DNA from: Eutreptiella sp. 'Long Island Sound 2002'
Lineage: Eukaryota > Protista > Euglenida
DNA: 64,000 nucleotides
Assembly: GCA_964036045.1 (NCBI GenBank)
Contig: OZ038379.1
Span: forward strand, 29,512,001-29,576,000
Reading direction: 5' to 3'
The notes beneath the pieces are model-generated. The model ran no database searches and was not told the DNA's origin. It saw only the letters and a list, made by a program, of their open reading frames with translations. Position 1 is the stretch's first letter; every line of letters starts with the position of its first letter. This document shows positions 1 through 59,320 of this stretch, piece after piece. The position numbers were made by a program, and so were the translations under genes.

Positions 1-432
1 TGCACGCTCCTCTGACTGCAGTCCATGCGTACACTACACCATGCGGTGCACTAGGCCGTGTATGGGGGCATGGGGCTTTGTGCACTCGCCCGCGGCTTTA
101 AAGGTGGGGGGCTCGAGTCGCCCATCTAGGTGCATGGCAGGGAGTACTGTACTCAGGGAGCTCATGTCCTGTTTTTCTATTTTTTTCAACCCTATAGAGC
201 CTTACTTACTGTAGCCACCGAGGAGGTGTTTTTTCAGGCTCATCACGGAGGTGGCAGTGCGCTTGAGCCACTGTTGACCATTTCCGTAGAGTCCATGGTC
301 TAACTGGCTCAGCACCACAGCCCGTGCCACGGGCACCAGTGTGTGCACACGCGCACGTGTGTGTGTGTGTGTCAGTGTGTGTGTGTGCGTGTGTGTGTAT
401 GTGTGTGTGTGTGTGTGTGAGTGAGCGAGTGA

Positions 433-493
<61 letters not shown>

Positions 494-1852
494 TGTGCTT
501 GGGTGGTTACACCCATGGCCAGCGAAGGTGAGGGCCGTGTGACCAGCTGTGCGTGCATGCGTGTTCGGCTGTTTTGCGACCGGACGCTTGGTGCAACGAC
601 TTACCCCTCCTTGATGATGGCGATGTCAGTGAGACGTCACACCAAGGTGCTCGCCATTGGAGAGGGATGACTTGGGCGAACCCGAGTGGGAGTGAGTCCC
701 GAGCACCGGTCATCTGCAATGCTGTTGTCCGTTCCTGCTGCTCTCTTGTGTATGTGTGAACGTGTGTCTGTGATTGCGACTTACACTGCTGTCAGTCGCC
801 TGCTCGTCTGAGCGCCAGCATATTTGCTCCTCTGATGAGGATGCTGGAGACTTGTACCCACAGTGCCTCCCGGTGCATTTGTATCCACATTGGTTATCTG
901 TTGTTTCTTGTTCCCTTCACTAAGTGTGTGGTCTGCTGTTGGCACATCCCTGTGAGCGCTCGGCAGTGAAATGTTTGGTGCTCAATGCTCCGCTTTTTCC
1001 ATCTTTCAGTTTCCTCTTTCTGCACCCTGTTGTATGCTGCACGTCTTCGGTACCTTTCTTCTCTCTCCCCCCCCCCCCCAATATACGGTTATGCACTGGA
1101 GTACTCTCTAGGCGAAAATGAGGTTTGCTGGCACCAACTGCTATCTGCCGCTCTGGACACCACGTGTATTGTACTGAGGTTATATCCCGGGTGTGTTGAC
1201 ACGGCTACGTGTCGACCGGGTGGGACCCCCCAGGGAGTGCCGGGGGAGTGAAAGTAAGGATTGCTGGCACCAATTGCTACCTGCCGTCAGTGTTTAATTT
1301 GTACCTTCATGGCTTTCTACTCTTCCTTAGAGCCCGGATTTGTAGACCCCTCCACAGTTCCCCTAGTGCCGGAACGTTTAGGCACACACTGGTTTTATGT
1401 GCCGCGGCGTGCGTTTAGTGCTGTTATGCACGCTCCTCTGACTGCAGTCCATGCGTACACTACACCATGCGGTGCACTAGGCCGTGTATGGGGGCATGGG
1501 GCTTTGTGCACTCGCCCGCGGCTTTAAAGGTGGGGGGCTCGAGTCGCCCATCTAGGTGCATGGCAGGGAGTACTGTACTCAGGGAGCTCATGTCCTGTTT
1601 TTCTATTTTTTTCAACCCTATAGAGCCTTACTTACTGTAGCCACCGAGGAGGTGTTTTTTCAGGCTCATCACGGAGGTGGCAGTGCGCTTGAGCCACTGT
1701 TGACCATTTCCGTAGAGTCCATGGTCTAACTGGCTCAGCACCACAGCCCGTGCCACGGGCACCAGTGTGTGCACACGCGCACGTGTGTGTGTGTGTGTCA
1801 GTGTGTGCGTGTGCGTGTGTGTGTATGTGTGTGTGTGTGTGTGAGTGAGCGA

Positions 1853-1897
<45 letters not shown>

Positions 1898-2334
1898 TGT
1901 GCTTGGGTGGTTACACCCATGGCCAGCGAAGGTGAGGGCCGTGTGACCAGCTGTGCGTGCATGCGTGTTCGGCTGTTTTGCGACCGGACGCTTGGTGCAA
2001 CGACTTACCCCTCCTTGATGATGGCGATGTCAGTGAGACGTCACACCAAGGTGCTCGCCATTGGAGAGGGATGACTTGGGCGAACCCGAGTGGGAGTGAG
2101 TCCCGAGCACCGGTCATCTGCAATGCTGTTGTCCGTTCCTGCTGCTCTCTTGTGTATGTGTGAACGTGTGTCTGTGATTGCGACTTACACTGCTGTCAGT
2201 CGCCTGCTCGTCTGAGCGCCAGCATATTTGCTCCTCTGATGAGGATGCTGGAGACTTGTACCCACGATGCCTCCCGGTGCATTTGTATCCACATTGGTTA
2301 TCTGTTGATTCTTGTTCCCTTCACTAAGTGTGTG
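1..2334. repeat. Tandem/segmental duplication: 1-930 repeated at 1427-2334, each copy containing a (TG)n-rich microsatellite
   Basis: Position 1 (tgcacgctcctctgactgcagtcc) recurs at 1427. The copies run near-identically to ...cttcactaagtgtgtg (930 / 2334) and differ mainly in microsatellite length. ORF-track peptides are duplicated (507-719 = 1911-2123; 553-759 = 1957-2163). Confidence 0.95.
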
Positions 2335-3050
2335 TGTGTGTGGGTGGGTAGGTGGGTCGGTGTGTCCATGTGTAGCAGTGTCTGTCGTTGACTGTTTTTG
2401 TGTGTGCGCGTGTGTTGGTGTGAGGTGCGGGGAGGGTGTGTGTGTATGTGTGTGTGCGTGTGTGTATGGCTTGTGCGTACATGTGGTGTGGTGCTCCTCA
2501 CATCCTCAGACAATTCCCCACACAGGCCCCCACACCCAGAAACAAAGAGACAATCATGCACCCCCCCACACACACACACCCACATACCATCAATGAAATC
2601 AAACCGCCCTGCCACCCCACCCACACCCACACACCGCCCAGCCACACATACCCACACTCACCTGCATAGTGGATGTGTTGTGGTTAGGTATGTGGGGCGG
2701 GATCATTGTGTGTGTGTGTGTGTGTGTGTGGGTGTGGGTGTGTGTGGATTGGTTTGTGCGCGTGGGTGTGTGTTTGTGTGTGGGTGTGTATAAATGACTA
2801 GTTGGGTGCGTGGTTGTGCGTGTGGGTGTGTGGGTGTTGGTGTGAGGTTTGGGACGGGTTTGTGTACACATGTGGTCAGGTGGCCCCCACATCCTCACAC
2901 ACACCAATACACAGACGCACGCCTGCACCGAGAAACAAACAGAAAGTCATACATCCACCCACATGCAAACACCACCATACACCCATACACATCCCCACAC
3001 AAACCGACACACCCCACACAAAGCCACACCCACACACATGTACACATGTT
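2330..3050. repeat. Degenerate compound microsatellite with alternating TG-rich and CA-rich blocks (two roughly 370-bp TG-then-CA units)
   Basis: TG-rich about 2330-2490, CA-rich about 2495-2665, TG-rich about 2700-2880, CA-rich about 2885-3045. Both TG-to-CA switches contain tacacatgtggt/cgtacatgtggt followed by cacatcctca. Confidence 0.85.
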
Positions 3051-3147
3051 GCCTGTGGCCAGGATGCATGCAGGGGTGCATTGGGGGGGGGGGGGTACTC
3101 CGGGTGTTAGGGCAAATGAGGGGGTGGACACGGGTGAAATTTTTTTG

Positions 3148-3243
3148 AATTCGTACGAATTTGCGTGATATTCGCACGAAATTCGTACGAATTCGCACGA
3201 AATTCGTGTGAATTTCACGCGAATTCGTACGAATTCACGCCTA
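3148..3243. repeat. Array of short self-complementary GAATTCGTAC-type units
   Basis: gaattcgtacgaatttgcgtgatattcgcacgaaattcgtacgaattcgcacgaaattcgtgtgaatttcacgcgaattcgtacgaattcacgc; includes the perfect 16-bp palindrome GAATTCGTACGAATTC. Confidence 0.85.
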
Positions 3244-3345: not shown

Positions 3346-4302
3346 ATGAAGCCTGGGCAAGAATTTTACCCCCTCAAATCCCTCAGAAGCAACCAAAAAT
3401 ATGGCGTTTTGCTCAAAAAACCTCGAAATTTGGGTAAATTTGCGCGAATATTCACACCCCATTCAAACGGCCACTTATCCCCCGTTCACGAAGGGTACAT
3501 TGCTCGTAGCATTGCACGCCTCCGGAGTACTCTGAGCGACAGACATTATCGTCCTGAAATATCGCCCCTAGCTAACACTTTTAAAGACTCTAGGGAGTTC
3601 TCCTCAAGGAGATCTACAAGCACACCACTCAAAGATCCAAAAGATGAGCGAATAGAAGCAGGTGAGCGATGCACATCTTTGCTAGGCGATTCCGCCCCCA
3701 CAAGCACATACTCACGCAAAGATCCCAACGATTCACATAACGAGGACTGTGACTTACAAACTTCTTCAGCAGAAGGAGCGATTGTAGCCACAACCTCGTT
3801 GTTTTTGGCAATGCCGAAGGAAGTTCCTTCCAAAAGGAAGTCTCCGTCCAAGAGGCCGGGCCCCTTGGCGTTAGATGACACAATCTCATCTTTATTAACA
3901 TCATACCGGCTCAATAAGTTCGCAGCCTTGATAGGAGTATCAAGGGCAGCACGATGGTACAACGTTTTTTGGGCAACACCCAAATATTTGGGTTCATCGG
4001 CCAAACTAACCTCCGAGTTTGCAAGTTTTGTGAATACAAGACGCCTACCAATATCTTTCATTATTAAACGGGGACGTTCAAGCAATTGCCCTACCCAATT
4101 TACGGTTCCACATGTTCCGCATGAAAGCATTAAACTTTGGAAATTGCATTGTGGTGGAAAATCAAACCTTGGTTGTCCGACCCGATTGATTGTACATGAC
4201 CGCAAGGCCATTCACATAAGTTCGCATGGACAAAGGACGAATACTGCGAAGAGCCTTAGCATTGTGAGTGGTGTTGTGTGCTTTTTTGGACGTGGGAGAT
4301 GA
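3346..4302 (+). CDS. Open frame of unknown function; part of it may be 5' exon(s) of the downstream gene
   Basis: 318-codon open frame. Its peptide YRPEISPLANTFK is repeated as YRPENSPPSNTFK in the short ORF starting at 4344, with matching nucleotides (attatcgtcctgaaa at about 3546 and 4375). Candidate donors AG|GTGAGC at 3662 (phase 1) and ATT|GTGAGT at 4264. Confidence 0.3.
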   Translation: MKPGQEFYPLKSLRSNQKYGVLLKKPRNLGKFARIFTPHSNGHLSPVHEGYIARSIARLRSTLSDRHYRPEISPLANTFKDSREFSSRRSTSTPLKDPKDERIEAGERCTSLLGDSAPTSTYSRKDPNDSHNEDCDLQTSSAEGAIVATTSLFLAMPKEVPSKRKSPSKRPGPLALDDTISSLLTSYRLNKFAALIGVSRAARWYNVFWATPKYLGSSAKLTSEFASFVNTRRLPISFIIKRGRSSNCPTQFTVPHVPHESIKLWKLHCGGKSNLGCPTRLIVHDRKAIHISSHGQRTNTAKSLSIVSGVVCFFGRGR

Positions 4303-4498: not shown

Positions 4499-4840
4499 GC
4501 TCGTGGGTGCGCAGGACCGACGACCGACTGAGGTCAGTTCTCGCTACCCAACCGAAAAAGGTCGAGCGCCCATTCGGATTGCGTGGAATGGTCCGATATT
4601 GTTCCGATTCAAAAAAGGCGCAGGTGAAGGAAATTGTCGTGCGCTATTTGCGGCAATTGAAGGAAAAGGGTGTTCTGGAGACTATTGCACTTCGAAAAGT
4701 GGCAACCAATGGAGCTTCACACGATGAGATTTTTGTGACCCTTGGGGAAAAGAGTCGGCAGTGGCAAGCTCTTCAAGAACGCGGTGGTCAAAAACGCAAC
4801 CGCAGTGATGTTCGTTGCGAAGACATGAAGCGTCGGAAAG
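4499..4840 (+). CDS. Exon, winged-helix-like repeat 1 (phase 1-1, 342 nt)
   Basis: Acceptor ctcgtttag|gc, donor aaag|gtcccg. Peptide [14 protein letters not shown]...GLRGMV...[13 protein letters not shown]...[18 protein letters not shown]. Confidence 0.7.
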
Positions 4841-7800
4841 GTCCCGTGATTTGTTGGCATGTGAGACACGTATCCAATGGGGTTCCGAAGTTTGACCGGG
4901 GTGGACCCGTCCTACTATCCCAACCCGCACCCTTTCCCACCTTCCGGTCAACACAACGCGAGCGACTGTCTTCAACGAACGCCTGTACTTGGATTCTTGT
5001 TTGCATCCACACCAACGCTATGATGCAGTACACCTCTCTAGGCCAACCGCCCTATGCGAGAGTGCACACTCTCTGAACGTTGTGCATCTCTCACTGTTCA
5101 CTAGCCCTCTTAACCCAGAGGAACTCTTTGGCGAACCCCCACATCTGCAGCAATTCTCCGTTGTCCCAGAGGCTCCATGGTCTGTGGTCATCATTAGCCC
5201 TTGCCAACGCTCCCTAGCCGGCTGCGACCCTCCACCTACCCCAACCCTCCACAACTGGACAATCCTCAACCGCCATCGCATACAGGATCCTACAATTCTT
5301 GGGCGATGGGAAGTTGGTGAGCGTGAGGGTTTTACATAGCGAAAGAAGCATTGGTGTGTGACTGTACTGCAAAGTATGCACCATACAGAACCCAAGGTTG
5401 TGTGACAAGTTACCGGTGGACATGATTGTTGCATGCCGTGCATAGGTTACGCAGATCACAAAACGTGGGAAGCACGCGCAGAAGAGAGATTTCAGCTCAT
5501 TCTGAATTGCAATACGGATAGATATGTTGGGCTGCCCACAATCCTTAAGGGCACGAAGAATGAGCACAGGCGCGAGACATGCCAAAAAGTATTTGGTTAT
5601 TTGCGGCAGCTGAAGGTGGCAGGCATTTTAGAGATGGCGGAATTGGAAGTCGTGCGTGGGCATTTTGGTCGTCCACACTCCGATGTAAAGATCAGTCGTG
5701 GGCGGAGATGGCATGAGTGGGTGCCAGGGCTCCCGGGCCCCAGGGTTCCAGAGCAAGCAGGCCGTCGTTGTAAACAAGCATGTCCTGCTGGCCCTCCCAG
5801 TGAAGATCGCAAGACAGGATGTCCGAAAAGACATGACATTTCCACTATGCTTGTCATCGGACGTGACGTCAAAGGTTTGCCCTCGTTGCCCATGGTTGCC
5901 TCAGCCATCATGTCACAACGTGCTGAGCAATATGTGGTGCGTTTTATTTCTTTTGGGGGCACTTCAGAATCCAACCATGCCAACTTTTCACCAAGTCTGG
6001 TGCTTGTGTGGTTTTCATGTCACGTCGTGACAAGTGGTGTCTCAACAGAGCTGAATACAAATTTAGTGCCAGTGAACATGGTAATAATGCTGCAGCCCCC
6101 CCCCACCACCCACCCACCCACCCTCCGGTCGTTTTGTCATACTAGGCTCCCGCCGGCCCCAAAAAATATCCACAATTCAATTGAAAGCAACTCCATGGAC
6201 CCTCTATTGACAGTTATTGACAGTATTAAAAGTCACCTGCTCTGGAATACTGAAAGATTGTTTCATTTCCGTATTTCGACCCACGAGCGGTTTGGGTTTT
6301 GTGTGTGTTAGTTATATAACCGCGGGACGAGACAAAAAATTTCGTAAATTTCCTGCACAATGGTTGAAACAATTTTTAACTCGTGCAACCACAGTTGCGT
6401 TTTCTGGATTTTCGAGATGCATTATTTAACGACGGACGTTCCGTTCTATCTCAATTTATGTCATCGTGGTAACAAGCTTGATCCAGCAGGCCCGTGGCAA
6501 TCAAAATTGCCCAACTGCTCAGGTTAGTTTTTGGTCCACCGTGTGCCGCCTGGATTGACAAATTCTGCAGGTCAGTGAAAGTGACAGTGAAGTGACAGTG
6601 ACGAAATTGACAGTGAGCGTGACAGTGACACTGACAGTGCTCATGCTATTCACGTTATCCCTTAGAACTCGTGTTCTTTCACCATAATGTCGTCAACCTG
6701 TCACCCGGAAATGGGGTGTGAAATGCAGGGAGCGGACTGAGGGTGAGGAGGTTGAGCCTGATTTGTATGCCTGCTCATCAGGGCTATGGCAATCACGAGT
6801 TGTTGAACAGCTGAAGTCGGTCCTTGGCACCTCGAAGGATGAGAAGCCTGAGCTGACGTTCGGATTGTCAAAGATCCTTCAGCGCGCGCCGAGTGACCAA
6901 CGATTGCGTGTAAAGCATCTAATCCGTGAGGTGCTGCGGCGAATGGCGAGGGATGGCGTGTTGGCAAAGGTGTCGCTGCGAAATGTAATGCACCGAGGCA
7001 GGCGCGTCAGCGAAATCTTCGTGAAACCAGGGCATAGGTGTCGTGATTGGATTCTTGCCCGCGGCAAGAGGCTCCAGAACGCAAACCGAGCCCACCGTCC
7101 TCAAGGGCACAGGCAAGGTATGCGTGTGGCAGATGGCTGCTGTTGGCCAATGCGGAAAGACTTGTAGGTAGAAGGGAAGTCCACAAGGGGACATGGGCTG
7201 TCTATCCATACGGAATCTGTCCCGAGCAACCACGTGTCCGTTTTCATCTTGATGCTGAGTGTTTTCGGCATTTTCCTTTTGAGCCCGTTTGTACACCATT
7301 TTTGCTCCACAGAGGGGGCGGGTGGCGGGCCCGGGCAGGCACCATGCGGTTCTCACGGGGGGCGTTGGGGGGCTGGGAGGCACAATGGGTCCCCGACACA
7401 GATTCTTATGCACCAATCAACACCTCCACCTGGACCACGGTATCCCTGACAGGCACCCGTCTTTCCGCCGGGGTCATGCCCAACCTCTGATCTGTGCTGT
7501 AATCCAGCCAGCCCAGAGGCCGAAGAATGTGTTGCCTGGTCGGCTGGCCTGCACGACTGTGGCGCGCACGCTTATGAACCTGACTGACACTGATATTGCC
7601 CTGCTTCTCCCTTTTCCAGAAAAGAAGATATGGGAAGACCGAACAGAGGACCATCTTTGTGTCGTGCTCAACACCAACACTGCAGAAGCAGATTCACGTC
7701 TTGGAATATGCAAATTGCTCTGCAATGGCAAGGACAGAGATCTTCAGAGGCAAAGGATTTTTCGTTACTTGCAGCAGTTGAAAACAGATGGGATCCTAGC

Positions 7801-10800
7801 AAAGGCGGCTTGGGGAACCGGTGTGCACAGAGGTGCCCAATTCCCTGAAGTATACGTCCGTGCGGGTCAGAAGTGGCGCGATTGGGTCAATTGTACGAAC
7901 AAGCAGAAGCAAATGGAGATGGCTACTCCTCTCCCTGAGAAAACCAATGGAACAGAAGTTGCACTGCCCGCCCGTTTTCTCCCAGGTGCGTTTTGACAAG
8001 GCGCACTTTGCAGTGTATTGCACTGTGTAATGCAAACTGGGGGCCATCGACCGACTACAACAGTGGATGCAGATCAAAGGAGTGGCCTCCGAGCTCTCCA
8101 ACAACCCGTTGAACTGCGTGGATTGGGCTCATTTAACGACTCCAACAGAATTGCAACGAAAGGTCATTGATTTGCGATACACAGATAAAGATGAGCCGCT
8201 GGAAATCGACTGCAAGATTAGAGATCACCCTTCCTACGACCTGCCCGCACGGATTTACTCCAATTTGGCATTACACCACAGATAGTGTAAGTCAGATTCT
8301 TCCGTTTGATTTGTCGATCATTTGTCCACCTCAAGTGCAAACAGTACCCCTGGCGGTGTCCAAAGGAAAACTGAACCCACGTAGTTGCCAGATTTTCCAG
8401 TTGCTCCCCATGAAGGATGTTGCTGTTCTCTTTTTTCCTATTTAGGGCAAAAAATTTTCAGGTGAGGGATGGCAACACACGCTCACAAGGCAAACAATCA
8501 GTATTTGGCATGTCATTTTGTGGCAACCAAGCGGAGCCGTCTGGAAATTTCCTCCTACATCATCGCACCTAGTGGTCATGCATCGCACCCGCGTTCATCC
8601 GTTACCGAGGTATCGTGCACCTTGTGGCTTTCGTTTATGGAGCCAAAGCACAGGCATGCAACCCCTGGGCACATCGTCCAGAGACTCCAACGTCCCGTGA
8701 CCAGCACCTCCACATCCGGCTCCATTTCAGTGACCAATGGCCGTCCACTTTGATCGGCATACAATTCATGAACACTCCTCTTTGACACCCCTTGTCTGGC
8801 ACTCGCCCCATCCCATCTGTTCCATACACCCCCTTATGATTCGACACATTGAACCTGGACAAGCAGCGTTTGGTGCGAGGCAACTACGCATGAGTTGTGC
8901 GGCAATGATCGAGGCGCTGGGCTCTATTTTTCTGTGTGGACTGCGAAGTTGCGATCAGTGGAGTACAGACCAAGGAGCACGTACTGTGTTGAATTGGGAA
9001 TAGTTCACCAATCACACATGTTGCATCTCAGTTGGACTTCAGCTTGCCGATTCCCAAGCCCAAGCTAAAAAGCAGGCAGGAGCAGGCATCCGCGCTCACC
9101 GCCACCGAAATCACCAACTCACTGAACCAGGATTTGGGGTCTGTAAAAATGGGGCAAATGGGGAAAACGGGGGGGAATGGGGGAAAATGGAGGAAAATGG
9201 GGGCAAATGGGGGGAAAATGGGGGGAAACGGGGAGTCATCAACAAAGCAGTATGGAAAATGCAGGGACAAATTCAAGAATGGTAGAAAAGTGGGAGAAAA
9301 ATGGGAGACAGAAGGGAGGAAGTGGGACGAAATACCCATTCTTGACAGTCCCATTTCCCCCATTTTTCTAGTGGCCGAAGATCTTCCCCTCAGTTCCCTT
9401 TGTAAAAATGAAGTCACCGAACTCACCGACGGAAGAATGGGAATTTCTGCCACTCACTGACACTCACCGCAACAGCAGCTAGTGTGGAGGCTTGCAGGAG
9501 GCTCCATACCTCGAAATGTGCAAATTTCACGGATATTCACTGCTGCTTCTCAAAACGGTCGAGTGGTTCATAATTTATCGCCTGCAAACATCCGTAAAAG
9601 CTCGAATTTTTGTTTCAGGTCCGTGATTCGTTGTGGACAAGCCCGAGTTCCCAATTATTATGTTGCATCTCCTTTGCAGATTGATTAATTGATATGGTGT
9701 GCTTTCTTTGCAGAAGTGGCATGGCGAATCACCCAAGTCTGTATTTTCGAGGGTATTTGGGCGCTTCATCACCGTTCCGTCCATCGGCTGGTAGGGCTGG
9801 CGGAGGACCTGCGCCCTCCGCCAGAGACAATGTCCATGGCGTCGTTGAAACAGGCAGCTCATGAGTATCAGGGTTGGCTGCCAATGGTCTCTGCGTTAGC
9901 ATAGGCAAATGACCTGGAAGAATTGTTGCGTATAGCGTATGTGTACAGAGTTGGATATTTTTTGAAGGTGGTATGATGTGTATTTCTCAGTAGAGACTCA
10001 GGAGTGCTCTCATGCCAACCCCCTGATGATGATGGCATCTCTCAGCGGTGCACAACCAGTAAGACAGGCGATACTAGACGATGCCCCCCCCCCCCCCCAG
10101 CAGAAGCCCCATATGTAATACATGCCTTCCCATTTTGGATAATTTGGAGCACGGTGAGCTGGCACAAGTCATGTATTCTGCCTCCGCAGAGGTGTCAGAG
10201 ATGATTCAGGAGCAGCCTGCATTCATCAGTGCTCACAAGTGATTATACCCCTGACAGCATATATATGAATCACCATACAATTTTGAGATTCCGACTGCTT
10301 CTCCAGACCTCAGATTGCAGCCAACAGTTGGTACAGAGTATCTTTGCTCTATGTTGAATGGACGAGCGCAGTCGGCAAGACAAAGAGCCAAATGGCACCA
10401 GACAAATCAGAACACCCCCGCAAGTGGAACACAAAGTTCTATAAGCACACGCAGAAGTGGATAATGATAATATTCACCCATTGTGTCATCCACATCGATT
10501 CATGACAAAAGGTTTGGTCGAATCCAAGTTGCTCGGCTAGCCTGAGTGCCAGGTGGGAGCCTCCACCCAAATGCGGCTTTCTTTGTGGCAGGAAAATTGC
10601 GACGTTCCAAACGCAGCAGTTCTGTGGACGCCCTGAAGCCTCAAGCTTCAGATTCAATGCCTGTTGGTATGTGTCTGTGCGGCGCATGTGCATGTGTGAG
10701 TGTGTGGTGTGCATCGCCAGGGAATATCTCAGTGCAAGACAGGTTTGTGCCAGAAAGCTGTCCCTGCAGATGGGCGTGCATATGCTTGCACATATTAAAA

Positions 10801-13800
10801 ACAATTCATTTGGAAAGAAGGAGGTCATAAATGTTTGGTAATGCAACAAACGGCGCTCTTCGAATGAATTAGATTGCCTGCTTGTTTGCCCACAAGAGCG
10901 CTCTTTGCCAATGGGTTGCTGGGAAAGCCAATCAGTCTGACTGGCTGTTTTGAGTGGTTGGTCTTCGTTTGTGCAGGTGTCGATATGTGAACAGCACGTG
11001 CACAGTGCCAGTTTCTAGTTTATGCGGGGACCCTGGGGTGCACAATTCCAGCACTCTATTATGCTGCATGCTCCCTGTTGCACATACATTACTTCTACAG
11101 CCCTGCAGCCCTGAATATCTGTCGCTGTGTTCTCAGGGAGCAAGCTATGGCAGGTGCACTCACGTAAGACTCACAGAGCGTTGGGGGTGCTCTTCCGCTG
11201 TCAATCTGGAGGGTTTCGCCTCTTTCTGACAGCACAGTGTGTGCACAATGAACCAGTGGGCCTGCCCCATTGGGCTGCAGTTTATCTTCATTCCAATTTT
11301 GTCCCAGCCAGCCCAATTACACCTGTCTCTACAGGCCCTCCTTGCATTTTCCCAAGAGCAACGTCCACAGTGTGGACATGTGATGAACGGCTGAGGCTTC
11401 AGAAGGCTTGGAACCGGGCAGTGAAGTCTGACCCTGCCAAGAAAAATTCTGCTGTGATGAAGGCGTTGAATGAGACCGCTGGTGTGCATCAGCTTCAAAA
11501 CGACTGCAGCGCTTATGGAGACCCGGGCATCCCTGTGGGCACAGCTCTCGCATCACGGGCCCTCGCCAACGTCCTGAAGCTGCACACCCCCCCGATGGCT
11601 GGCATTTGGTGTGGGATTGAGCCTAAAGTGTGCCCGTTCCCCATCGTCTTCAGTATTGTCTTCTGTGGAGGGTATTCAGGTGTGCATCTGCAACCATGCA
11701 TGATGCGTGAGCTGAACTGAAACTTGGTGTGCACTATTCGCAAGTGTCATGGAAATGATGTGGGTACTGTGCATACCTATTTGCATTTTTCCCACTTGCC
11801 AGGCATGCAGACCCCTGTCCCAGGGTCATGAATGTTTTTGAAAAGTTTTGCGTTGCAAGCGCTGCAAAAAGCAAGCACTAACACGGACTGCGAACAACAT
11901 GAAATGACAAGGTGCAATTCAGAAACTAAAAGTGTGTTTTGCAAGAGTATGTGATGCATGTAGTTACTGAAATATAGGACACCACCCTGGGGCAAAGTGG
12001 GTCAGTCTGAGAGCAAAGCACCACCGTTGGGCAAGGTTGGAGCCAAAAATTGTCACATTGCATTTATTGTTGACACCATTTGTGTGACACCGCCTTTGGG
12101 CCAGGTGGGTGTTGGTGTCTGTGAGAGGCACTACCATTGGGTAAGGCAGGAGCCAGTTTGAAAATTGATTGTTTTGTCCCCCACTTCCTTACAGCCAGAG
12201 TGACCATGCTGATATGGGATAGTGAGGGCAAAATGACTGCAGGCACCAAACTGCAAGAGCCGCAAGATGCGGCTCCGAGCCACAACAGCCACCAAACGCG
12301 GTTGGTAGGCGCGAATCCTAGCTAGATGAGCCACGAAACGTGGCTCCAAGCTGTGAAATGTATCTCTGAGCTGCAAGATTCGGTTCCATGCTGCGAAACG
12401 AAACTCTGAGCTGCACGAGCAGCGCGAGCCGCGAAGCAAAGCTTCCAGCCACGCCTCCAACCTGCAAGAGCCGCGAGAGCCACAGAGACACAGCCCCAAT
12501 CCGCAACACACGGCTCCGAGTTGCAAGAGCCACAAGACACGGCTGTGAGCTGCTCTGAGCCGCGAGAGACCGAACGTGATGCCAAGTCATAGGAGCCGTG
12601 AAACTGGCTCTCACGGCTCAAAGCCGCGTTTCGTGGCTCAGACCGCTTGGGATCTGCGAGATGCGCAAGAGCGGCAAAACACAGCCCCAAGCAACTCCGA
12701 GCCACGAAACACGGCCCCGAGCCACTCCCAGCCACAAAATGTGGCTCCAAGCCGCTCCAATCAGCGAACCGCACGTATGAACAGCAAAATGCCTGCCGGG
12801 AAACACGGCTCCGAGCCACGATAGCCACTAAACGAGGACGTAAGTAGGGAGACGTAGCTCCTAGCCACAACCTACTAGAGCCGTGAAACAAATCTTTGCG
12901 CCGCAATAGCAGGGCAAGCTGCAAAACACAGCTCCCACGGCTCCCATCTGTTGCGAGGCACACCTCAGAGCCGCAAGAGCCACGAAGCACGGCTTCTAGC
13001 CGCGACTCCTAAGCCGCGGAACCCTGCCTGAGAGCCTCGAGAGCCGCCCATGAAAGCACCGAAACGTGGCTCCGAGCCGCTCGTAGCCGCGAAACACGGC
13101 TGCAAGCCATGAGAGTTGCGAATCACATCTCTGAGCCACAAAGTGCCAAGCTGCAAGAGCTGCGAAACACAGCTCAGAGCCACAACAGCTGCCAAGCGTG
13201 GCCCCGAGTCGCAAGAGTCAGGATACCTGGCTCCAAACCGCGAAAAGCATCTCCTAGCCGCGACCACGGCTCCAAGTCGCGAGAGCCGCGAAAAGCGCCA
13301 CCCAGCTGCGGAACAAATTTCTGAGCTACGAGAATGGTGTGAGCCATGCAACACAGCTTCAAGCCCCTCCACCCATGAAAAGCGCCCCTAAGAGCTATGA
13401 AATGCAACTGTGAGTTGCAAAACGTGGCTGCTAGCTGCGAGAGCCACCGTGGCTGCAACCCCAGCTATGGGTATAGTAACCAAATGGGCTATCAGACTTC
13501 AGACTTCAGACTTGTATGGACCATCACCCCTAACCCCCCACCCCCACCCCAACACCCTTTCTACCCCCCCCCCCCCCGTGTCAGACTCCCCCCCCCCCCC
13601 CCATGTCCCCCCCAATATCAAACTTGTCCATTGTCACCACACCCTTGAGGTGTAGAAGTGGGTTGTGGTCTCGACCCTAGCGTCTAAAACCCAACCAGTG
13701 CTTGCAACCCCTTCAATGATGGTACGTGCCCCCCCCCCCCCCCAGGGCTTCTTTAGAATAATTAAATATCAAGGGGGAGGGGGGTCCAAAACCCCCTTCC

Positions 13801-22800: not shown

Positions 22801-25800
22801 CCCTTGTGCCTTACATAACCTGGCAACCAGAGGGAGGGGGGCGGAGGTCCCTCTTCGAGGTGCCTTGCCGAAGGCAATAGACTTTTTGGCCTATACCAGT
22901 AGGGTTGGAAAATTCGTTTCACCACATGTGTCTACACCCAAAATGCTCAGACTTGTGGGTACAAATTTCGTCCCACTGTGGAGGCCCCTTGGCGTGGGAT
23001 TATGGAGCGGTATTGATTTTTCCCCAGTATGGGGCTCTTGAGAAAGTAGGGGCTATGTAGCCATATTGCACATTCATGATTTCTCCCCACTATGGGGACC
23101 CCAAGTCGAGGCTTGGCTTCAGGTTATGGTGCCTCTCTTATTTCCTCTTGGTAGGGGACCCGTTGGCCTGGGTGACGTGGCCACCCGTGGCCAAGGGAGA
23201 TGTGGCCACCAACACGATTGCTTGCAAACAATAGGATGTAAACAGTAGATGAAGACAACGTTGTTGATGTTACTATGTGTTGTGCACTGCTTGCCAGATA
23301 CAAGTTCAGTTTTATATGTATCTTTTCCCGTTCACAGTTGCAACACAGCTGCACTGTGCACTGTCCTGCACCTAAGATCCCAACAAAGACAAAAAAAGGC
23401 AACCACAGCCACAACAGTTTATGCTGAGCAGGTCATTATGCTACCAGTGCGGTCCTGCAGGGGTGCTCCCCCCTAGAACCCCCCCCCCCCCCTCCCGTGG
23501 ACCGTGCCCCGGCCTGGTCAAGCGAAGCCCTGCCCTGCCTGGACAGGGGTGCTCCAGGTCTGGGGCTTCAAACAGCCACAGATGGTGGAGCATGTCTCAG
23601 AGCCTTCACCCCCGCACATAACGTGGAGAAAGAGGCTGAGAGATAAGGCTACTGTGTGGGAGCAGCTGAAGTCTGCAGCCCATGGGGATCGGTTGCATTG
23701 ACAATGCCGAGTTGTACGTAGCCTGGTTTTCGGATTGTTGTTCGTGTATTGGGGAGTTCAGGTTATTTTTTCTTGGCCAAGGGCACACTTTCAATTTGCC
23801 TTGAGCTGGTTAGATTCCCATCCCTTTCTCGTCACCTTCACCTTTTTCTGCTTGGTGGCCAAAGGTTGGGGCAGGTGGTGCTGTGGAAGGAATCAATCCA
23901 CCCGCCCCAAAAGAATATATTATTTAGCCCTCACCATCATGTCACCCAGGTGCACAGGAATGTCCGAAAAGTAGATGAAAGTGGCTTTCTTGAATTGGTC
24001 TGATCCCAGTCCATTCCGCCCCCCTCCCCCCACCACACCAATGTTGCCTTTCAGGCCCCACCCTTTCGGGTGTCACAGCCATTCAGAACTCACCTGCCCA
24101 GTTTTTCCTTGTGTGATGTTGGTTCCCAGCTTTCCGCGCCTCTTCCCTTTTTGTGGGAAGCTTGTGTGAGTCAGCCCGAGGTGGTTTTGGGGCAATGCCA
24201 GTCGCCAAAATATGACAGGCCGGAGCGCCCGATCGTTTGGGCAAAACAAAGGGGTTCCAGTGTTGAAATATTGTACTCAGGGTTAGAAATGGAATTGCGT
24301 TGGGAAATGCTCTTCGATCTTTGTGATTACTTTTCAAACCGTTTCAGGGGATAGTATGCCTGGGTGCTTTTTGCTTGGGAGGGCATGGGTTGTAACATGG
24401 GCTCCATTGAATACTGACACATTTCCTCTTCTTGCAATGTCTCTTGAACTCGTGCTTCCGAGGGTCGGTTGCCTCTAACAGGAGGTATCCCCAAAGGGTT
24501 TGTAGGGATATCCCCAGGGCCTCCCAGAAGTGTGTACCCATGGCAGGGTGCACACGTCTGTAGCACAGCCTTTCCTTGTAGTGCCAGAGACCCCAAAACT
24601 GCAATGAGGCTGCAGGGGAAAGCTGGGAGGACAAGGATTTGCTGCTGTCGGGGGCTGGCAGGGTTTCTGAGCACCTCCCAGAAGCGTACACTGTTGGCTG
24701 ATGCACGCTCATGAATGGTGCTTGTCTGTGTACTGAGAGCTTTGTGCTGTGCAATCGTTTTGTCCAACCTGCCTGCTGCAGAATCAGTGGACCTTGGCAA
24801 TCAGTTGATGTATACTGGGGAAGGACGGGTCGACAAGAAGGGATTTATGCAGGCTCATCAGGAATTGGAGGCTGGCAACCGTGCGCTTCTCCAGTCTATG
24901 ATCCATGGCTCACATGTTCGTGTCATTCGCGGGTCTACAGCAACAAAGGTGGGCGTTCAACCATACCTTCCACCACAAGGATACAGGTTAGACTCTCTTC
25001 TCCTGATTATGCGTTGACCATGCCCAAGGATGCTCAGATTACAAATGGGGCCTTTGTGGGGCCGCCCCAACTTGATTTGGGTAGTCCTCTTAGGAAGGGG
25101 CAGGTTTGGGATGGCATGAGTAGGCAGACAGGTGGAGAGCATTTCTCCTCATTTTGGCCGAGTTTTACTTACCGAACCTTCGTTTTCATTCTTTTGCCCT
25201 CCCTCCCTCCAATCCTGTGTATACACGGGTTGGACCTGCCACAGAACCTGTCAGAACCTCACTCGGCAGCAGGAAGACCATTCGGTGCTGTCCCAGCCCT
25301 GAATTCACATGGTAAGAGCCTCAGACACATACATGTCAGCGCACACAGCCTCACCATGACCCTTGCTTCGTAGAAGCGAGCCCAATTAAGGATGGAGGAA
25401 GGTAGATACTGCCGGGCAAATCAGTGCAAATATCTGTCCACAAATCAGTGCACGTACCATTGCAACCGTCAGTGCCATATTCCTTTGGCTATGATGCAAG
25501 AAACAGAGTGCCTAGGAGAAGGGAGGCCAACCCAGGTGCACAAGGCACCTCTAGAGTTGCACAGATGAATGAATGCACAGACAAGACCGGAGGAAAAATG
25601 ACAAAATGTGTACCGGGGAACACATGTACCCGCATATTGTATCCGGTAACAAAATAATGTTCCCCAGCATGCCTGACGACGAGGACGTCGTAGAAGGTCG
25701 TCAGGCATGTCGGGGAACATGTTGGGTAACATTTTACCAAAATGTGGGAACATTTTCCGTTTCACATTCAAAACACAATTTTTGGACCAAACCACCATTC

Positions 25801-43800: not shown

Positions 43801-46800
43801 AAAAACGAAATTTTACCCCCCACCGTATGATACAAAAAGTTTCTAGCGCCTTTGGCGCCCCATTGGGACCAAATACTTAGGCGGCCCTAACTCCCCACCC
43901 AATTTTCTGGCAAGTGTCATAAAGAATTGGTTTTGTAAACTGGTAAAAAAGGGGGGGCATTTTGAAGTGGCATTTGTATGCTGCGCGGGGGGGGGGGGGT
44001 CCAGACCCCCCCCAAAAAAAACAGGGGAAAGGCATTTTTTGGGCGTGTGTTTCGCACCCAAGTAGTGACCTCAACAACCTCTTTTCGAGCCCAAAATGCT
44101 CCCAAATCAGCCTTGAGAAGCACCCCTTTTGCATACTTTTTCAAGTTGCACCTTTGTGCCCCATCACCCCTCCCAGCATCCCCCCTCCCAAGCCACCCCC
44201 CGGGGAGCCTCCGGCCAACGGTTAGTGGGGGGGGGGTTAGTTGGCGTCCAAACTGGAGGAGTCCCCCCCCCCCCCGTGCCCCCCATTTCTCCTCATTTGC
44301 CCCCATTTTCCCCGTTTTTCCACTTCCCCCATTTTTCCTCTGGGCACATCATGCAGTATCACAGGGCACACCATCATAAATCTGGTCAGGCACTTTCCAG
44401 CACTGGCACTGTAAGTTGAATGATTTGTGGGTTACATTTTTCGTTGACCCACATCCCGCAGGTCCCCACAAATATTAGCCCTCAAGAGGTTCCCCGAATT
44501 TTCCACCCCCTGTGTTGCATCAGCACAAATGCTTCGTTGCTGTGCAGATACGATGGGCTGTACACTGTCAAGTATTGCTGGCACCAGATGGTTCCTGGTG
44601 TTGATGGCCAGTTGTTCCGCATTTGGCGCTACCATATGCAAAGCGTCGATGATTATTTTCCCAAGCCCTCTGTTCAGCTGACCCAAGCAACCGATGTCCG
44701 CACTGTTACCGTGTCTGTCTGCTTGGACAACAGATCCAGAATTGTTTTAGGTGCTGCAGGGTTCGGGGTCAGGTTGTGGTCGCTGGTATTTGTCTCCCCC
44801 CCCCCCCAACTTCACATATTCCATGCAATCCCCCTCCCATATGGGTGTCTGACTTTCGCCAATTTCTCTGATACGTTCTGCCCATTCATTTGGATTCTGA
44901 GGCAGCTGAAATAAGACGGGTCAAAATGGTCTGAAATTGCTTTACCGTGTGAATTCTAAAGATTTGCGAAAATAATTAATCCTGGCACAAGGTGTTGTTG
45001 TCCGCAGAAAAAAACGCAAGAAAAATTGATTATTGGCTTCATGTCTTACGCAAAAATGGGTTCCGCAAAAAAAAATTGCAAAAATAAAATATCCGAGGTG
45101 CCTTGCCGAAGGCAATAGAATTTGTTTGTTGGTTGTTGGTACACAGGAGTAAACCCGTGGGCCGAAGGTTTCTCCTGGGGGGAAAACAGGCCCACTCGCC
45201 CAAACCAACGTAAACAAAACGTGACCACAGGGGTGGCACGCCAGGCTGTGCGCGCAACGGAGGTACAGCCTTCGTACTTATTTTTCTGTCATTCCCCATG
45301 AGGCAGCTGTGGAGCTTTGCTGCTGCTGCACATGAATGTACCACCGCAGGTCATCTTCGAGGGTACAACAGACGGATGTCACCCCGCAAACACATGTTTG
45401 GAACTGGTTTGTTGAAAAACTGGTAGACCTGAACCATGCTTGTTGGTGCTTATCTGTGCTATGGACTGCAATCCCAGAGTCCAACTGATCGACATTTGTA
45501 TGCCTGTGTAGGAATGGACTGCAATCTCAGAGTCCAAGGTACACGGTTTCTTGCAGTAGCAACAAAATGAATCAACCCCAATCCCCAAAACGCAAAAAAA
45601 AAACCGCAAAAAAATTAATTTTTGGTCCAACACCCCACGCAAAAATGGGTTCCGCCAAAAAAATCGCAAAATTTTTTTTTGCCCATTTTTGCCTATTTTG
45701 GATGCTGCCGCAAAAATTTTGCTTATTATTAATTCAAAACACCCAACGCAAAAATTAGGATTCCGCGAAGCTTTAGGATCTGCACGGTATTTGATTTTTG
45801 TGATAGGAAAATGCATGGATATGAGATTGATGTAATTATGGTTGCTGGGTATGGGGGGTTATGAGGGCGTGATGAGGAAATGGCGCAGATTGTTGTAAAT
45901 CCCCATATAGAATACAACAATGGCTTTATAATGGTCATAGCACAGATGATTTTTCGTCAAAAATGTCAACAGGCCCCTCAAATCAATGAGTGGAATGCAC
46001 CAGTCACAATGAGGTGTTGTCTTCAAGTGCACATTGTTTCCAAAGGTTTGGAATTGATCAAAATGTGCCATTGCCAGACACATTTTTTTTGGGGGGGGGG
46101 ACTATGATGCCTAACTTTTGCCATTGTTAGACCAACGAATTGGGCCGCCCTCACTTCGTTGTTGGGGAGAATGGGGGCAGGGACTGGTGGGGGCTCAGGC
46201 TGGGAAAGCGCACCCACACACCCTTTGTGGTGCTCTCACCCAGTATCCTACACAATGCACGTGTCTAGCTTGCTATCTCTCTAGCTGCCGGTTGATGTCT
46301 ACGCCACGAATGCCACCAAGGGTGGGCAGGGGCACCCAGAGCATTGGGTGAGGCATGGAGATGGGGAGTGGTGTGTCCCTTGCGGGTGTTATGGTGGTCT
46401 GGCTGTGCAGAGCGAACACACAAACCGCAAGGTGCACCCCTACCCAGAGCAGGGTACTTCCTCTGCAGAAAAGACTAAAAAGACTGATCTGCAGAAGACA
46501 AATCCCCAAGGGACCACAGAGGCATCTTTCTGGGGGCAGTAAGAATATTTCCTCGCGTTAATCTGATAGAGGAACACAAAGGACCTAATCTCTTGCACAC
46601 TCAGCTTCTCTAGTGGCAAATTCTTCCGCTGTAGCTCCTTCAGCACCATCTGCTGCTGCTGCAGTGTCTTCTACTACGCACACTGCAGCGGTGGAACCCA
46701 GCAGCATACAATAGGATGCCCAGGGAAAGCTGTGAGACCTTGCCAGCCTGAGACTGTGAAAAAGGGAAGCAACCCCGGGGCGCTGAACATTCACCTCAGG

Positions 46801-49800
46801 GTTGAGAAATCTGGCCAGCACGGGCTGTATGACTGCAACAGCAGGGCTTGGTTTTTGATGGCAATTCTTGTTGCGGAGGGTTACACCAGTGTAGCTGACC
46901 AAAGTGTAGATGGTGGGGCACCTAGGACCATGCATTTTTGCTGTCTTAGACCCCGGACATAGACCACTGAGGTACCACCCATCCTTGACTACATTGGGAA
47001 TGCCGTGCACGCAATGCAAAATTTTGTATGTCGGCAAATACTCGAACCCTAGTTTTGGCCCCTTGGGGGAGCACCTGACGTGGCACGCGCGCAGCGCGTG
47101 CGCGGCGCGGAGATTCGGCCTTCTGGCCCACCCAAGTACCCACAGTTCCTACCCCGGGGGCCCATAGTCTAGGGATTTTAGGCCTGATCCGTGATACTCT
47201 TGAGTAAGAAACGTCGTTTGTTGTTGTTCATTGAACATCCGCGCTAGATTGGGCAAGACGAGGCGCGTAAGAAATGACGTTTGTTGCTCTTTCAAGATCC
47301 CGCCCTCGAAGCTCAGCCCCGGCACGAGGTAGCGGTTGGTGTAGGGCGAAACTTGTCGTTGGGCTGCAATATTGTCGGACCTAGCGCTCGTTTCCGTGGT
47401 GTACATCGCTGTTAAGATCCCGTGGGTACGACGGCTATCGCAATATTTGGAGGGGGCAATGGGACCACCCTTCACAAATCTATTCGCATCTTGTTGTACC
47501 TCACCCAGTTTTGTATTCGGCGCCAAGTTCGCACCCCTCGTATGGCCCTTTGCCCCATGTGCCACCTCATGTGTTGGTTGTTATCTTGTGGGCTTTGCTG
47601 CTTTGCTGTGCTAGCAGACAGGTGGCAGGTGATCTTGGGTGAGTTTCCCAGCAGGTGCATGCAGTGCGCACGCGGTGCAACAACTTGGCCAATTGAGCTC
47701 AACTGTGATATAGAGGTACCAGGGACCAGGGACCGATTGTTTTTTTGGAAATTTCGAAATGATGGGTTTGCAAATGGCCCTAACTGCACAACGACTTGAA
47801 AAAATGACCGCAAATCCGTGTTGGGGGCCCACGTTTGCACTTGTCATTAGGGACGTCTCAGCGGTGAATGCTGCGCATGTCCTCAGGTGAGATGCAGATT
47901 GACATCTTCGACACTGTGGAATCCGTCCAGGCGGCGGTGCAGCAGCTGCTGGCAAAAGCCCGGGCCAGTGGCTATGCCACCGTGTACCCGCTTGAGGAGA
48001 AGTCTCAGCAGTCTGCAATGCACGTTGGGCCTGGTTGCGGATTGCGACGTCGTGGGCCACACCAACGAAAAGTGATCATCATCAGCGGGAAACCAGGTGA
48101 GGAGGAGCTCTTGGCGGCCCAAAGATTCCGAGAGTTGATGGAAAAGGCGGATACAATCACTTTTGCGCCCACTTATGTCAAGGCTGTGGATTTGTGCACG
48201 CAGATGCTTGCGGAGAAGATGGTCTGCAAGAGCGCTGGCACAAGGCTTGGTATGCTCTGGAGAATGTGAAGGCTTGGGTAGCAGACCTGGAGTTTGTGTG
48301 TCTTCCTAAAAGCGGTGGATCTTTTGAATCCCAGCTTTCCAGTTTGTGTGCCCCATGTGTAGGCCAAAGCCCCACCAAAGCGTCCATTTGTATACAAATG
48401 AAGGCCTAATGGGTGCCTGGGTCATTGCCTACCTTGGACCTTGCATCCTCCAAGAGGGAAAAGTGTGGGAAATGTTGTCTGGAGGACCAATCAGTGGGGA
48501 GGGAATGGGGCCAAACTGGGGGGAAACAGGGGAAACAGCAGGGGAAATAGGGGAAGTTTGAGGAGTGGGACAATTTTGTATAAATGGTACTCTGTTGCCT
48601 TCGTGTGAAATGATTGACCCTTGTTCTCTCGTCCTCATGCCCAAATAGACACAAATAGACAGAAATCAACATCACAGACACAGCTTATGCATCGAAATAT
48701 GCACCAAATTATCATCTGGCTCCTAGTCCCTTTCTTGATGCTGAACAACGTATGCAGGTGGGAGTGAAACATGACCACCAAAGTTTTTTGTTCAGGAGTC
48801 AGCCATTGTGCGAGATGAGAGGCATAAGAGGATTTGCACTGATCGTTCGCCTCCTTTGCGTCCTGAGTTTCTGTCCCCTGTGAAGGTGTATCAGCCTCTT
48901 CTTCCGTTGTTCTCCTCTTCTTCCGCTGTCTTCCTCGACCTCCCATGCCCTTGAGTGCCGGGGTATTCCCCTTCCACATTCCCAATGCCTCAACTATATG
49001 TAGATCCTCCTCTCTACATCATCTTCCTCAGCATGACATTTAGGCAGTGGACGCGGCTTTGTGCGGCTATTTTTTTGTTTGTTTTTTGAGTTGGAGCTGG
49101 AGTGGAGGATCCATTTTTTTGTACCGCATGCTCTTTTCCTGAAGCCACTGCATCCCTACATCTATATTCTTCAAGATCATACTACCCCATGCCAGCCCGC
49201 AGCCCAGCATTCTCCATCCCCACCCCCCCCCCTTTCCCCCCCAGTTTTGTCCCGATCCCCCCAGTCTTCCCTGCCCCTCCCCGAATTTCCCCCGCCTTCC
49301 CTGTGTTTCCCCCTGCCCGCCCCCCCCCCTCCCCAGTGTATCCTTGCTTTTGGCGGCCAAACTCTGTTTGGCCCCGGCAAACATGGAGGCCTGACAAGGC
49401 GAAACAAGCATGCGAGTAGGTACAGGATATAATGGTGCCCAGCACAGCAGGGTAAGAGGGACACAGCATCCTAGCGCATCAGGTGAGTGTCCTCAGCTCC
49501 ACCCCAGCAGGGAGCAAGTGGCTTTTAGACACCAGATCATCAAGTGGTTGTGTTGGCTTCACCGATATGGAGGCCTACATGTTGACCTCTATGTTGACCA
49601 TCCCTCCCCACAAACTTTCCGCCTCCGATCGCTGTGAATCAGTTTCTACTAGTGCTGCCCAACCACAGTGTGAAGCTATCCTTCACCAATGGATCTTTTT
49701 CCTGCTATGGATAACCCTGAGAGACAACCTGTGACCCGTCGTGAAACAGGATCAACAAGCTGTGGGCCAAACCAGCCACCAATCTCCACTGAACGATCAT

Positions 49801-52800: not shown

Positions 52801-54352
52801 TAGCGGACACATTTATTCAGGGTCTGCCTTTGCCAAAGATCATCTACTCAAGGGTATGTGTGGAGATTGGTGACGATAATGAAAGCGAGCAAGCCAGTCT
52901 GCAGCACACCCCATATGATCATTTTCACTGGGGTGACATTTGGAAAGAGGCACATGTAAAGCCGCTGGATATTAGTTTTGTGGATCCGTTTGACAAAAAT
53001 GGGCGTATACTGCACTGGTGGGTGGACAGGTGCTGATTCTTCTTGTCTTCTGTCGTTGTGCAGTCGAGCCAACCTCCCGTCGCCACACTCCGCAATTTGG
53101 TACCGGAATTGTTATTGTTCCAGCATTTATCCTCAAGATGAGTTTTTCAGCATCAACTCCATTTTCTCTCTAGTGCCAGATCTTAGTTGTAGTATCTGAA
53201 GGAGTATCAAAGCAACGCAAATGGTGCTGTGACACCATGCTTTTCTGAGTATGTTGGAACGTTTGTTTTCCCAATTTTGGTTGGAAACGCTGGCCACCTG
53301 CCATCTGTTGATCTTCATCGCCCCTTGATGCTTGGAACCCCCCTCTCTCTCTGTTTGTTTCCCCTTTTGTCTGCAATTCTCTGTTTTGTCTCTCCTGTGA
53401 CAATTGTGGGGCTATGTGTTGCCCATCTTCCTGCGCTGGTCTCACCCACCCTCAGTCCTGCAATCTCGGCACACCCTGCATCAGATGAAAAACGCCACAT
53501 GCTGTGGGCCCCATGGGATAGGGCGGATTGGGTGATCTGTACGACTGCACACAGTCGGAATAAGCCGTTATGAATTGGTTTTTGTGATTCCTCCCTTTGC
53601 TCAACTATGGCAGCTTTGGGGGCATCAAAATGATTGATGAAAAGCAACTCAACACTACTGCCAGTTTGTCGAAGTAGCGAGGCGACTCCAACTCATATGT
53701 GTACACCCATCCACAGGCTGGTAAGGAGGGCAATGCAGACAACTGTTGTGTGCCATGGATGGTGTCATTCGAGGAGTCCTCCCCCTTGGTCTGCGCTTGG
53801 GTCCTCCACACTCAACACGGTGGCAGGGCTGATTGGACATGCTACTTGCAGTTGCTTTGTCCAGTGGAGTCTGCCCATTCTGTCCGGTGTGCCGCCCATA
53901 TATGCCCACCTTCGAGTTCTCAATGGGATTTGAAATGTGAACATTTGATGAAATCTAAGGCCCCAAAGCGCCGCACAGGAATTCGGCTTTTCCTGGTTCG
54001 TCCAGTCGTGTCGGATGCTATCCTCATGTTGTGTGGGATGTCAATGTTCTGTCATTTCTTCAGTGTAGGTGGTTCTTGGGCGCTGGTAACGCATAATTTG
54101 ACTGAAGTGTGTGTATTAATTTGTTCAACTGCTAAAGCTGTGGGGGATCATGCCGGCAGACTGATGTGTGTGTGTGTGTGTGTGTCTGTGTGTGTCTTTC
54201 TGAGTGTCTGTTTTTTTTTTCGAAAGGCGCCTAGCCACATGACATTATTTCTAATAGCCCAACGAAGAGTCTTCACGTCCAGGCCCAGTGTTTTGTCATG
54301 CCATCCGCAGGGCGTTGGTCGGCTGTTGGTGTGTCTGCATAGTGTGTGTGTG

Positions 54353-58535: not shown

Positions 58536-59320
58536 CCCGGGGGGGGGGGGGGGCGACTCCGCAGGTCCTAGGACGCCAACTACCCCTGCTCCCCCCCCCC
58601 TAGGGGCCTCCGGCCAACAGTTAGTTGCCAAAGGTGACACCCTTAGGAGTCCATGGGCGCCAAAGGTGCCCGATGCTCCATGGGCACCAAAGCCGCCCAA
58701 AGGAAAATTTTGTCCATTTTGCACCCCAACACTATCCTTAAACCCAACCCTGACCGTAACACCCAACCCAACCCTCAGCCTAATCCTAACCCTACCCTTA
58801 CCCCTACCCCTACCCCTAGCCCTAAGCCTAGCCCTAGCCCTAACCCTAACCCTACCCCTCGCTCTAACCCTAACCGTAGCTCTTCCCCTAACCGTAGCTC
58901 TAACCCTACGCTAGGGTCAGAGTTATTGTTGGGGTCCAAAATGGAGAGCAATGATGTGGCAAAAGCCGCCATGAACGAAATTTGGGGGATCTTGTTCAGC
59001 CTAATCAACATGGCTGGCATGGCTGAACCAGTTCGCTGCAAAGGTTAGGGTTAGGTTTATGGTGATGGTATGGTTAGAGGGAGGGCAAGGGGAGGTAAGG
59101 GAAGCCTGTGCCCCCCCCGCCCCCACCACCCCAAATCGCCCCACCTGGACTGGACCCCCCCCCCCCTAACCGACCCTCCCGGACCCCCCCCCCCCCCCAA
59201 GCCCCTCCCAGACCCCCCCCCCCCCCCCCCGTCCCCCCCCCCCCCGGGGGGGGGCCTCCGGCCAACAATTAGTCAGGGGGGTAGTTGGCGTCTAGAACCG
59301 AGGAGTCGCCCCCCCCGGGG
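58536..59320. mobile_element. Non-autonomous TIR element with 8-bp target duplication (hAT-like by TSD length) carrying degenerate telomeric repeats
   Basis: GGGAAGGA at 58528-58535 and 59321-59328. Left arm cccgggg...ggcgactccgcaggtcctaggacgccaactacccc is the imperfect reverse complement of right arm ggggtagttggcgtctagaaccgaggagtcgccccccccgggg. CCCTAA-like array about 58737-58915 and TTAGGG-like tract about 59042-59077. Confidence 0.78.

Follow-up and report, generated by a model that had tools for sequence, protein, structure and literature searches.

Outside plants, animals, and fungi, it is an open question how histone methyltransferases acting on lysine 9 of histone H3 (H3K9) are directed to their targets, and the chromatin of euglenids has hardly been explored. 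Here we ask what is encoded by a set of repeated segments in the genome of the euglenid Eutreptiella sp. 'Long Island Sound 2002', and what these segments may contribute to the methyltransferase gene in which they lie. The stretch analysed (hereafter the window) comprises 64,000 nucleotides (nt; C2:29512001-29576000 of the 2.28-Gb assembly), is about 50% GC with CA/TG microsatellites, and has a eukaryotic character. An earlier examination of its letters and open reading frames (ORFs), which we refer to as the original prediction, described four divergent winged-helix-like domains, each on its own symmetric phase-1 exon. We find that the four segments are exons 3-6 of a euglenid gene of more than 65 kb, and we favor, with moderate confidence, the reading that this gene encodes an SUVH-type enzyme in which five exon-duplicated winged-helix-like modules would serve as a multivalent nucleic-acid anchor.

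The four segments are true repeats, with pairwise identities of 22-34% (BLASTP). Units of about 90 residues translate in frame and contain all four of the motif strings previously listed for them, so that the shared motifs are borne out both by translation and by an alignment in which W, R, L, G, L, G, L, G, G, and W are invariant. The best pairwise BLASTP match between repeats has an E-value of 1.6e-10 (nominal database of 1e8 residues), and repeat 4, searched against all six frames of the entire genome, retrieves repeats 3, 2, and 1 with E-values of 4e-8, 3e-6, and 3.5e-5. Each unit in the window is preceded by a polypyrimidine tract and AG and followed by GT.

Six-frame searching of the genome further identified a second locus (C10:34299428-34305715) in which all repeat units lie in one open frame. 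This full-length, intact copy is 100% identical to all coding exons of the gene on C2 (the parent gene) and 99.2-99.6% identical over the 3' untranslated region (UTR), with every intron missing; 2,493 nt of the 3' UTR contain 5 mismatches and 2 gaps. Its 5' end is CTGAGTGTCTATTCTTTTTCG, joined to the base after an AG acceptor of the parent gene; apart from a single mismatch, this 21-nt leader relic equals the 3' part of the Euglena spliced leader. The exact 21-nt leader 3' part occurs about 5,800 times in the genome, dispersed on both strands, and zero times in a reversed control; the three copies examined are spliced-leader RNA genes, in which GTA and a conserved intron part come after the leader. 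The leader string also agrees with the spliced-leader primer that PMC5654406 gives for E. gracilis. Because its coding identity is complete, its introns are gone, and a spliced leader stands at its 5' end, the C10 locus is a copy, in DNA, of an mRNA already matured by trans-splicing and complete cis-splicing, and it is therefore usable as complementary DNA (cDNA) evidence for the exon joins. All full-length analyses are based on this natural intronless copy, with no hand-joined exons.

The junctions in the C10 copy (RRKG/YADHKTW, DVKG/LWQSR, GHRQ/EKKIW, and FLPG/KLRRSK, the slash marking the join) coincide with the predicted AG and GT sites, all in phase 1, confirming the acceptors and donors exactly where they had been placed, and the exon lengths, all multiples of 3, stand as given (Table 1). 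The same copy answers the possibility that the splice sites are unused or that the exons end in a separate transcript, since the sites are used and the frame continues into the SRA-SET region; the repeat exons are thus carried on the methyltransferase mRNA, as had been supposed. The array size of four had to be revised, as a fifth unit, repeat 0, lies upstream of the window. As to how the C10 copy arose, no poly(A) relic is found at its 3' end, which has no A-run and directly adjoins the start of a very young element present in at least 40 copies at 98-100% identity. Its 5' neighbor is the end of a multicopy element of about 460 bp, itself downstream of gag (zf-CCHC) and reverse transcriptase ORFs. 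Given the missing poly(A) relic, the copy may be a template-switch chimera or may have been flanked by later insertions.

The encoded product has 1,317 residues in one frame. The five N-terminal modules (residues 8-97, 125-213, 243-329, 382-472, and 496-583) occupy the first ~615 residues and are connected by basic linkers that are probably disordered. They are followed by an SRA (YDG) domain at residues 705-861 (PF02182, E-value 3.7e-29, 101.8 bits) and a SET domain at residues 1180-1295 (PF00856, E-value 1.7e-18), in which the NHSC motif is readable as FLNHSCNPN; a post-SET CxCx4C motif is present at the C terminus. The best sequence matches among solved structures are Arabidopsis SUVH6 (6e-26, spanning both domains), SUVH9, and SUVH4/KYP. 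A Pre-SET domain is not reported by Pfam at E-values of 0.01 or below, and no nine-Cys cluster is evident between residues 861 and 1180. A word-index protein search with the SRA-SET half gave one weak NSD-type match, which is uninformative. Judged by its domains, the protein is an SUVH-type enzyme, with an SRA methyl-DNA reader followed by a SET/post-SET region predicted to be an H3K9-type methyltransferase.

All 14 coding introns have GT-AG borders, and their phases, in order, are 1, 1, 1, 1, 1, 1, 1, 1, 2, 1, 1, 0, 2, and 0; from this run it follows that seven consecutive exons (repeats 0-4 and the 75- and 345-nt exons) are symmetric, phase 1/1. The five repeat exons are all multiples of 3 and start 2-7 codons ahead of the first Trp of their repeat. 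Since there is one domain per exon, in the same phase and with introns at the same relative position, the array most likely expanded through tandem duplication of exons, which fits the origin first proposed for it.

The fold of the modules was predicted with AlphaFold2 for repeats 2 and 4 from an input alignment of seven paralogue sequences, giving confident models, with a predicted local distance difference test score (pLDDT) of 88.1 and a predicted template modelling score (pTM) of 0.73 for repeat 2, and a pLDDT of 84.4 and a pTM of 0.72 for repeat 4. In both, DSSP assigns the order helix 1 (H1), strand 1 (b1), H2, turn, H3, b2, wing, b3, with a b1 of two residues, an H2 of one turn (four residues), an H3 of 17-20 residues, and a long b2-b3 hairpin; the C-terminal helix of the repeat 4 model (residues 86-93) is just a 3-residue helical turn in that of repeat 2. 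A winged-helix-like fold is accordingly predicted for each module. With both models, a Foldseek search of the PDB returns almost exclusively winged-helix proteins, among them LmrR/PadR, HlyU, the N-terminal domain of plant O-methyltransferases, TFIIE-alpha, RAD21/Scc1-C, RTP, and BLM RQC, with At2g34160 and ZMYND11 (repeat 4) and ALBA1 (repeat 2) as rows of other folds. An ESM Atlas shape search retrieves PadR, HTH_Crp_2/HTH_5, RPA, and RepL clusters and one uS8 cluster, with template modelling (TM) scores of 0.51-0.62.

Sequence comparisons add little to this picture. The five-repeat profile has weak matches only among PDB sequences, the best being plakophilin-2 (E-value 0.012), followed by Bacillus RTP and an ETS domain (E-values 0.3-0.5), both aligned along the H3-wing portion. 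The look-alikes proposed by a language model (DUF2582, IclR/LexA at 0.75, and RegA at 0.85) are no more than leads. Pfam finds no family for the four window exons at E-values of 10 or below, including OST-HTH and Linker_histone, and the fold lists contain no LOTUS or linker-histone GH1/GH5 entry, so that neither of the two candidate folds originally named for the modules is recovered.

Two results weigh against the winged helix, and with it against the reading we favor: the best Foldseek matches are middling (E-values 0.026-0.036, TM scores 0.4-0.5), and the alpha/beta folds of the uS8 N-domain and R3H tie with winged-helix rows at the same Z. The modules could instead be two-layer alpha/beta domains (uS8-N, R3H, or Alba-like) that resemble winged helices in size and element order only. 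As H2 is a single turn, each domain in effect places two long helices on a sheet of three strands, and Smr, SepF, and At2g34160 rows join those of uS8 and R3H in the tie. We nevertheless regard this alternative as unlikely, as the Foldseek top lists are almost entirely winged-helix for both models and PadR and HTH families make up most of the Atlas list. The sequence signature is a further likeness rather than a test: L-x3-G-[VI]L after a long helix, a hairpin, and [VI]-x2-G form the common winged-helix pattern (MarR/PadR/ArsR). The models and fold lists thus point to a winged helix, as first suggested, but do so not decisively given the middling scores and the ties.

The distribution of charge bears on what such modules might bind. 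The repeats are basic throughout, with isoelectric points (pI) of 9.0-12.0 and net charges of +3 to +14; repeat 3 is the most basic of the four in the window (net +12, pI 11.5), and repeat 0 is higher still (net +14, pI 12.0). The linkers are likewise all basic (pI 9.7-12), and the one between repeats 1 and 2 contains KR-x10-KRRK, a string that resembles a bipartite nuclear localization signal. Within the repeats, positive charge gathers on H2, the loop, and H3, the last having a net charge of +4 to +6 in five of five repeats, while H1 is neutral or acidic in most (-3 to +2). The H3-side face is what canonical winged helices present to nucleic acid. From this charge distribution we infer that the modules are probably nucleic-acid-binding. 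The basic H3 face, together with the SRA and SET partners, makes a multivalent DNA or chromatin anchor for an SUVH-type H3K9 methyltransferase the most likely role of the array. Such an anchor would supplement the affinity or selectivity of the SRA domain and would thereby help to determine the sites at which H3K9 methylation is written by the SET domain.

The modules could instead bind RNA, tethering the methyltransferase to nascent or guide RNAs, by comparison with the SelB and MARF1 arrays and with the uS8 N-domain, which contacts rRNA. We consider this doubtful, because SRA and SET, the domains that accompany the modules, have DNA and nucleosomes as their substrates and the OST-HTH search was empty. 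In addition, all of the scores concerned fall in a non-diagnostic range, and the Atlas match shares fewer than 170 features and is therefore a lead only. A role as protein-protein or scaffold winged helices, as in kleisin C termini, cullins, ESCRT-II, and Stn1, recruiting partners or oligomerising the enzyme, is rather improbable: the pI of 9-12 in every repeat and linker and the positive H3 in all five repeats would be unusual for purely protein-binding winged helices.

A third locus records how transcripts of the parent gene have been processed. At C27:8977935-8978811 (minus strand) lies an older retrocopy, 89% identical over 841 nt, which like the C10 copy lacks all introns and carries a spliced leader at its 5' end. 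It begins with the full leader TTTCTGAGTGTCTATTTTTTTTTTCG, after which 13 extra nt record another leader acceptor, 13 nt upstream of the first. The stretch from exon 1 through repeats 0 and 1 into the start of repeat 2 is free of introns. The repeat 0 exon is followed by 12 extra in-frame nt that match the first bases of the parent intron and hence point to an alternative donor (+12 nt). The copy is cut off within repeat 2, and four TTAGGG telomere-type units directly follow. Between parent gene and C27 copy, the ratio of nonsynonymous to synonymous substitution rates (dN/dS) is 0.55 within the domains and 0.63 outside them, which, if the C27 copy is dead, weakly suggests some constraint on the parent gene.

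These processing records also bear on the combinatorial use of modules foreseen in the original prediction, in which symmetric exons would be skipped to give isoforms with different module sets. With seven consecutive phase-1/1 exons, any subset could be removed in frame, and the alternative donor and leader acceptor in the C27 copy indicate that processing is not rigid. However, no repeat is skipped in either fossil cDNA (five are present in the C10 copy and three in the C27 copy before its truncation), and a profile search finds no exon-skipped or other partial copy in the genome; we hold this kind of use to be improbable. It is likewise improbable that the modules form a lineage-specific, fast-diverging DNA-reading array for sequence- or structure-selective H3K9 methylation in the manner of PRDM9, re-programmable by exon skipping or by leader trans-splicing at internal acceptors.

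Searching the genome with the repeat profile identified three places only, namely the parent gene, the C10 copy, and the C27 locus, and the array is therefore unique to this gene in the genome. A weak match on C24 (E-value 0.24) was rejected on inspection. SRA domains are encoded at no fewer than four other loci (C12:62464889, C4:19501324, C2:171450256, and C21:23153170), with no winged-helix-like repeats near them by profile search. Among 1.84 billion representative proteins, the five-repeat profile has six matches, all from this species itself: five ORF calls on exons of the same gene in another assembly, and the C27 copy. None of these representatives outside the species matches, in a library that evidently lacks euglenid transcript-derived proteins, so that absence from other euglenids cannot be concluded. 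Word-index protein searches found nothing for the N-terminal 615 residues and, for repeats 1-3, just ORF calls on the species' own assemblies. Among the papers searched, none connects Euglena with SUVH-type enzymes. The gene joins the known SRA-SET architecture to a fold class that is also known, but the sequence family of the modules and their fivefold arrangement are unrecorded. It offers a tractable case for the targeting of H3K9 methylation, with a gene model validated by the genome's own fossil cDNAs. Furthermore, retrocopies headed by a leader can stand in for cDNA when very long, intron-rich genes of this genome are annotated.

Table 1. Features of the parent gene on C2 (window positions unless a contig is given).
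Feature	Position	Strand	Description
Exon 1	upstream of repeat 0 exon		short; carries ATG and trans-splice acceptor
Repeat 0 exon	C2:29494273-29494623		351 nt, phase 1/1; ~22 kb before window position 4499
Repeat 1 exon	4499-4840	+	342 nt, phase 1/1; core 4501-4767, then basic linker
Intron repeat 1/repeat 2	4841-5445	+	GT-AG, 605 nt, phase 1
Repeat 2 exon	5446-5874	+	429 nt, phase 1/1; core 5460-5720, then 52-residue Pro/Gly/Arg-rich linker
Intron repeat 2/repeat 3	5875-6781	+	GT-AG, 907 nt, phase 1
Repeat 3 exon	6782-7117	+	336 nt, phase 1/1; core 6784-7056
Intron repeat 3/repeat 4	7118-7619	+	GT-AG, 502 nt, phase 1
Repeat 4 exon	7620-7985	+	366 nt, phase 1/1; core 7628-7891
Intron after repeat 4	7986-10591	+	GT-AG, 2606 nt, phase 1
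Linker exon	10592-10666	+	75 nt, phase 1/1; basic Ser-rich linker (KLRRSKRSS...)
Linker/SRA exon	11335-11679	+	345 nt, phase 1/1; linker end and SRA domain start
Remaining coding region	24782-56395	+	seven exons; SRA, SET, C-terminal CxCGxxxCxG post-SET string
First four exons of remaining coding region	24782-24986, 44548-44750, 47887-48249, 51349-51536	+	
Last three exons of remaining coding region	52821-53029, 54929-55103, 56048-56395	+	last exon ends with stop
3' UTR	56396-59452	+	extent as recorded in C10 retrocopy

Several further features lie in the noncoding parts of the gene. Long CA/TG and related microsatellite tracts occupy window positions 200-3200, within the 22-kb intron upstream of the repeat 1 exon, and the same intron contains two long overlapping ORFs (3346-4302, plus strand; 3546-4211, minus strand), neither of which has a Pfam match. 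The intron between repeats 2 and 3 includes a degenerate GTGACA-type short tandem repeat at about 6575-6640. The 3' UTR harbors an intron at about 58528-59324, the gene's only one without GT-AG borders, which is absent from the C10 copy and may be a euglenid non-conventional intron.

Among known systems, the closest in domain content are the plant SUVH proteins (Arabidopsis SUVH4/KYP, SUVH6, and SUVH9), which share the order SRA, SET, and post-SET Cys motif and the Pfam combination SAD_SRA and SET. The euglenid protein differs from them in its ~615 N-terminal residues of five winged-helix-like repeats, for which no counterpart was found, in the Pre-SET domain that Pfam does not report, and in its host, which is not a plant. 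The modules themselves share H1-b1-H2-H3-b2-wing-b3 with the winged-helix superfamily (PadR/LmrR, MarR/SarA, ArsR/HlyU, RTP, TFIIE-alpha, and the Scc1/RAD21 kleisin C-terminal domain), whose members are their top Foldseek, VIA, and Atlas matches; PadR and RTP also share the C-terminal helix of the repeat 4 model. Other arrays of such domains, the LOTUS/OST-HTH arrays of MARF1 and TDRD5/7 and the four-winged-helix array of SelB, have RNA or helicases as their ligands, and none of them is known to be linked to SRA-SET; LOTUS/OST-HTH is, moreover, a family that neither Pfam nor the fold lists return for the modules. Linker histones H1/H5 bind nucleosomal DNA through a globular domain, a small and strongly basic winged helix, but this domain too is missing from the Pfam matches of the modules and from all fold lists. 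In PRDM9, a histone methyltransferase is coupled to an array of tandem modules that diverge rapidly. Its modules are C2H2 zinc fingers on one exon, whereas those described here are winged-helix-like and putative readers; the likeness between the two is one of functional analogy only, that of a module array on a SET-family enzyme.
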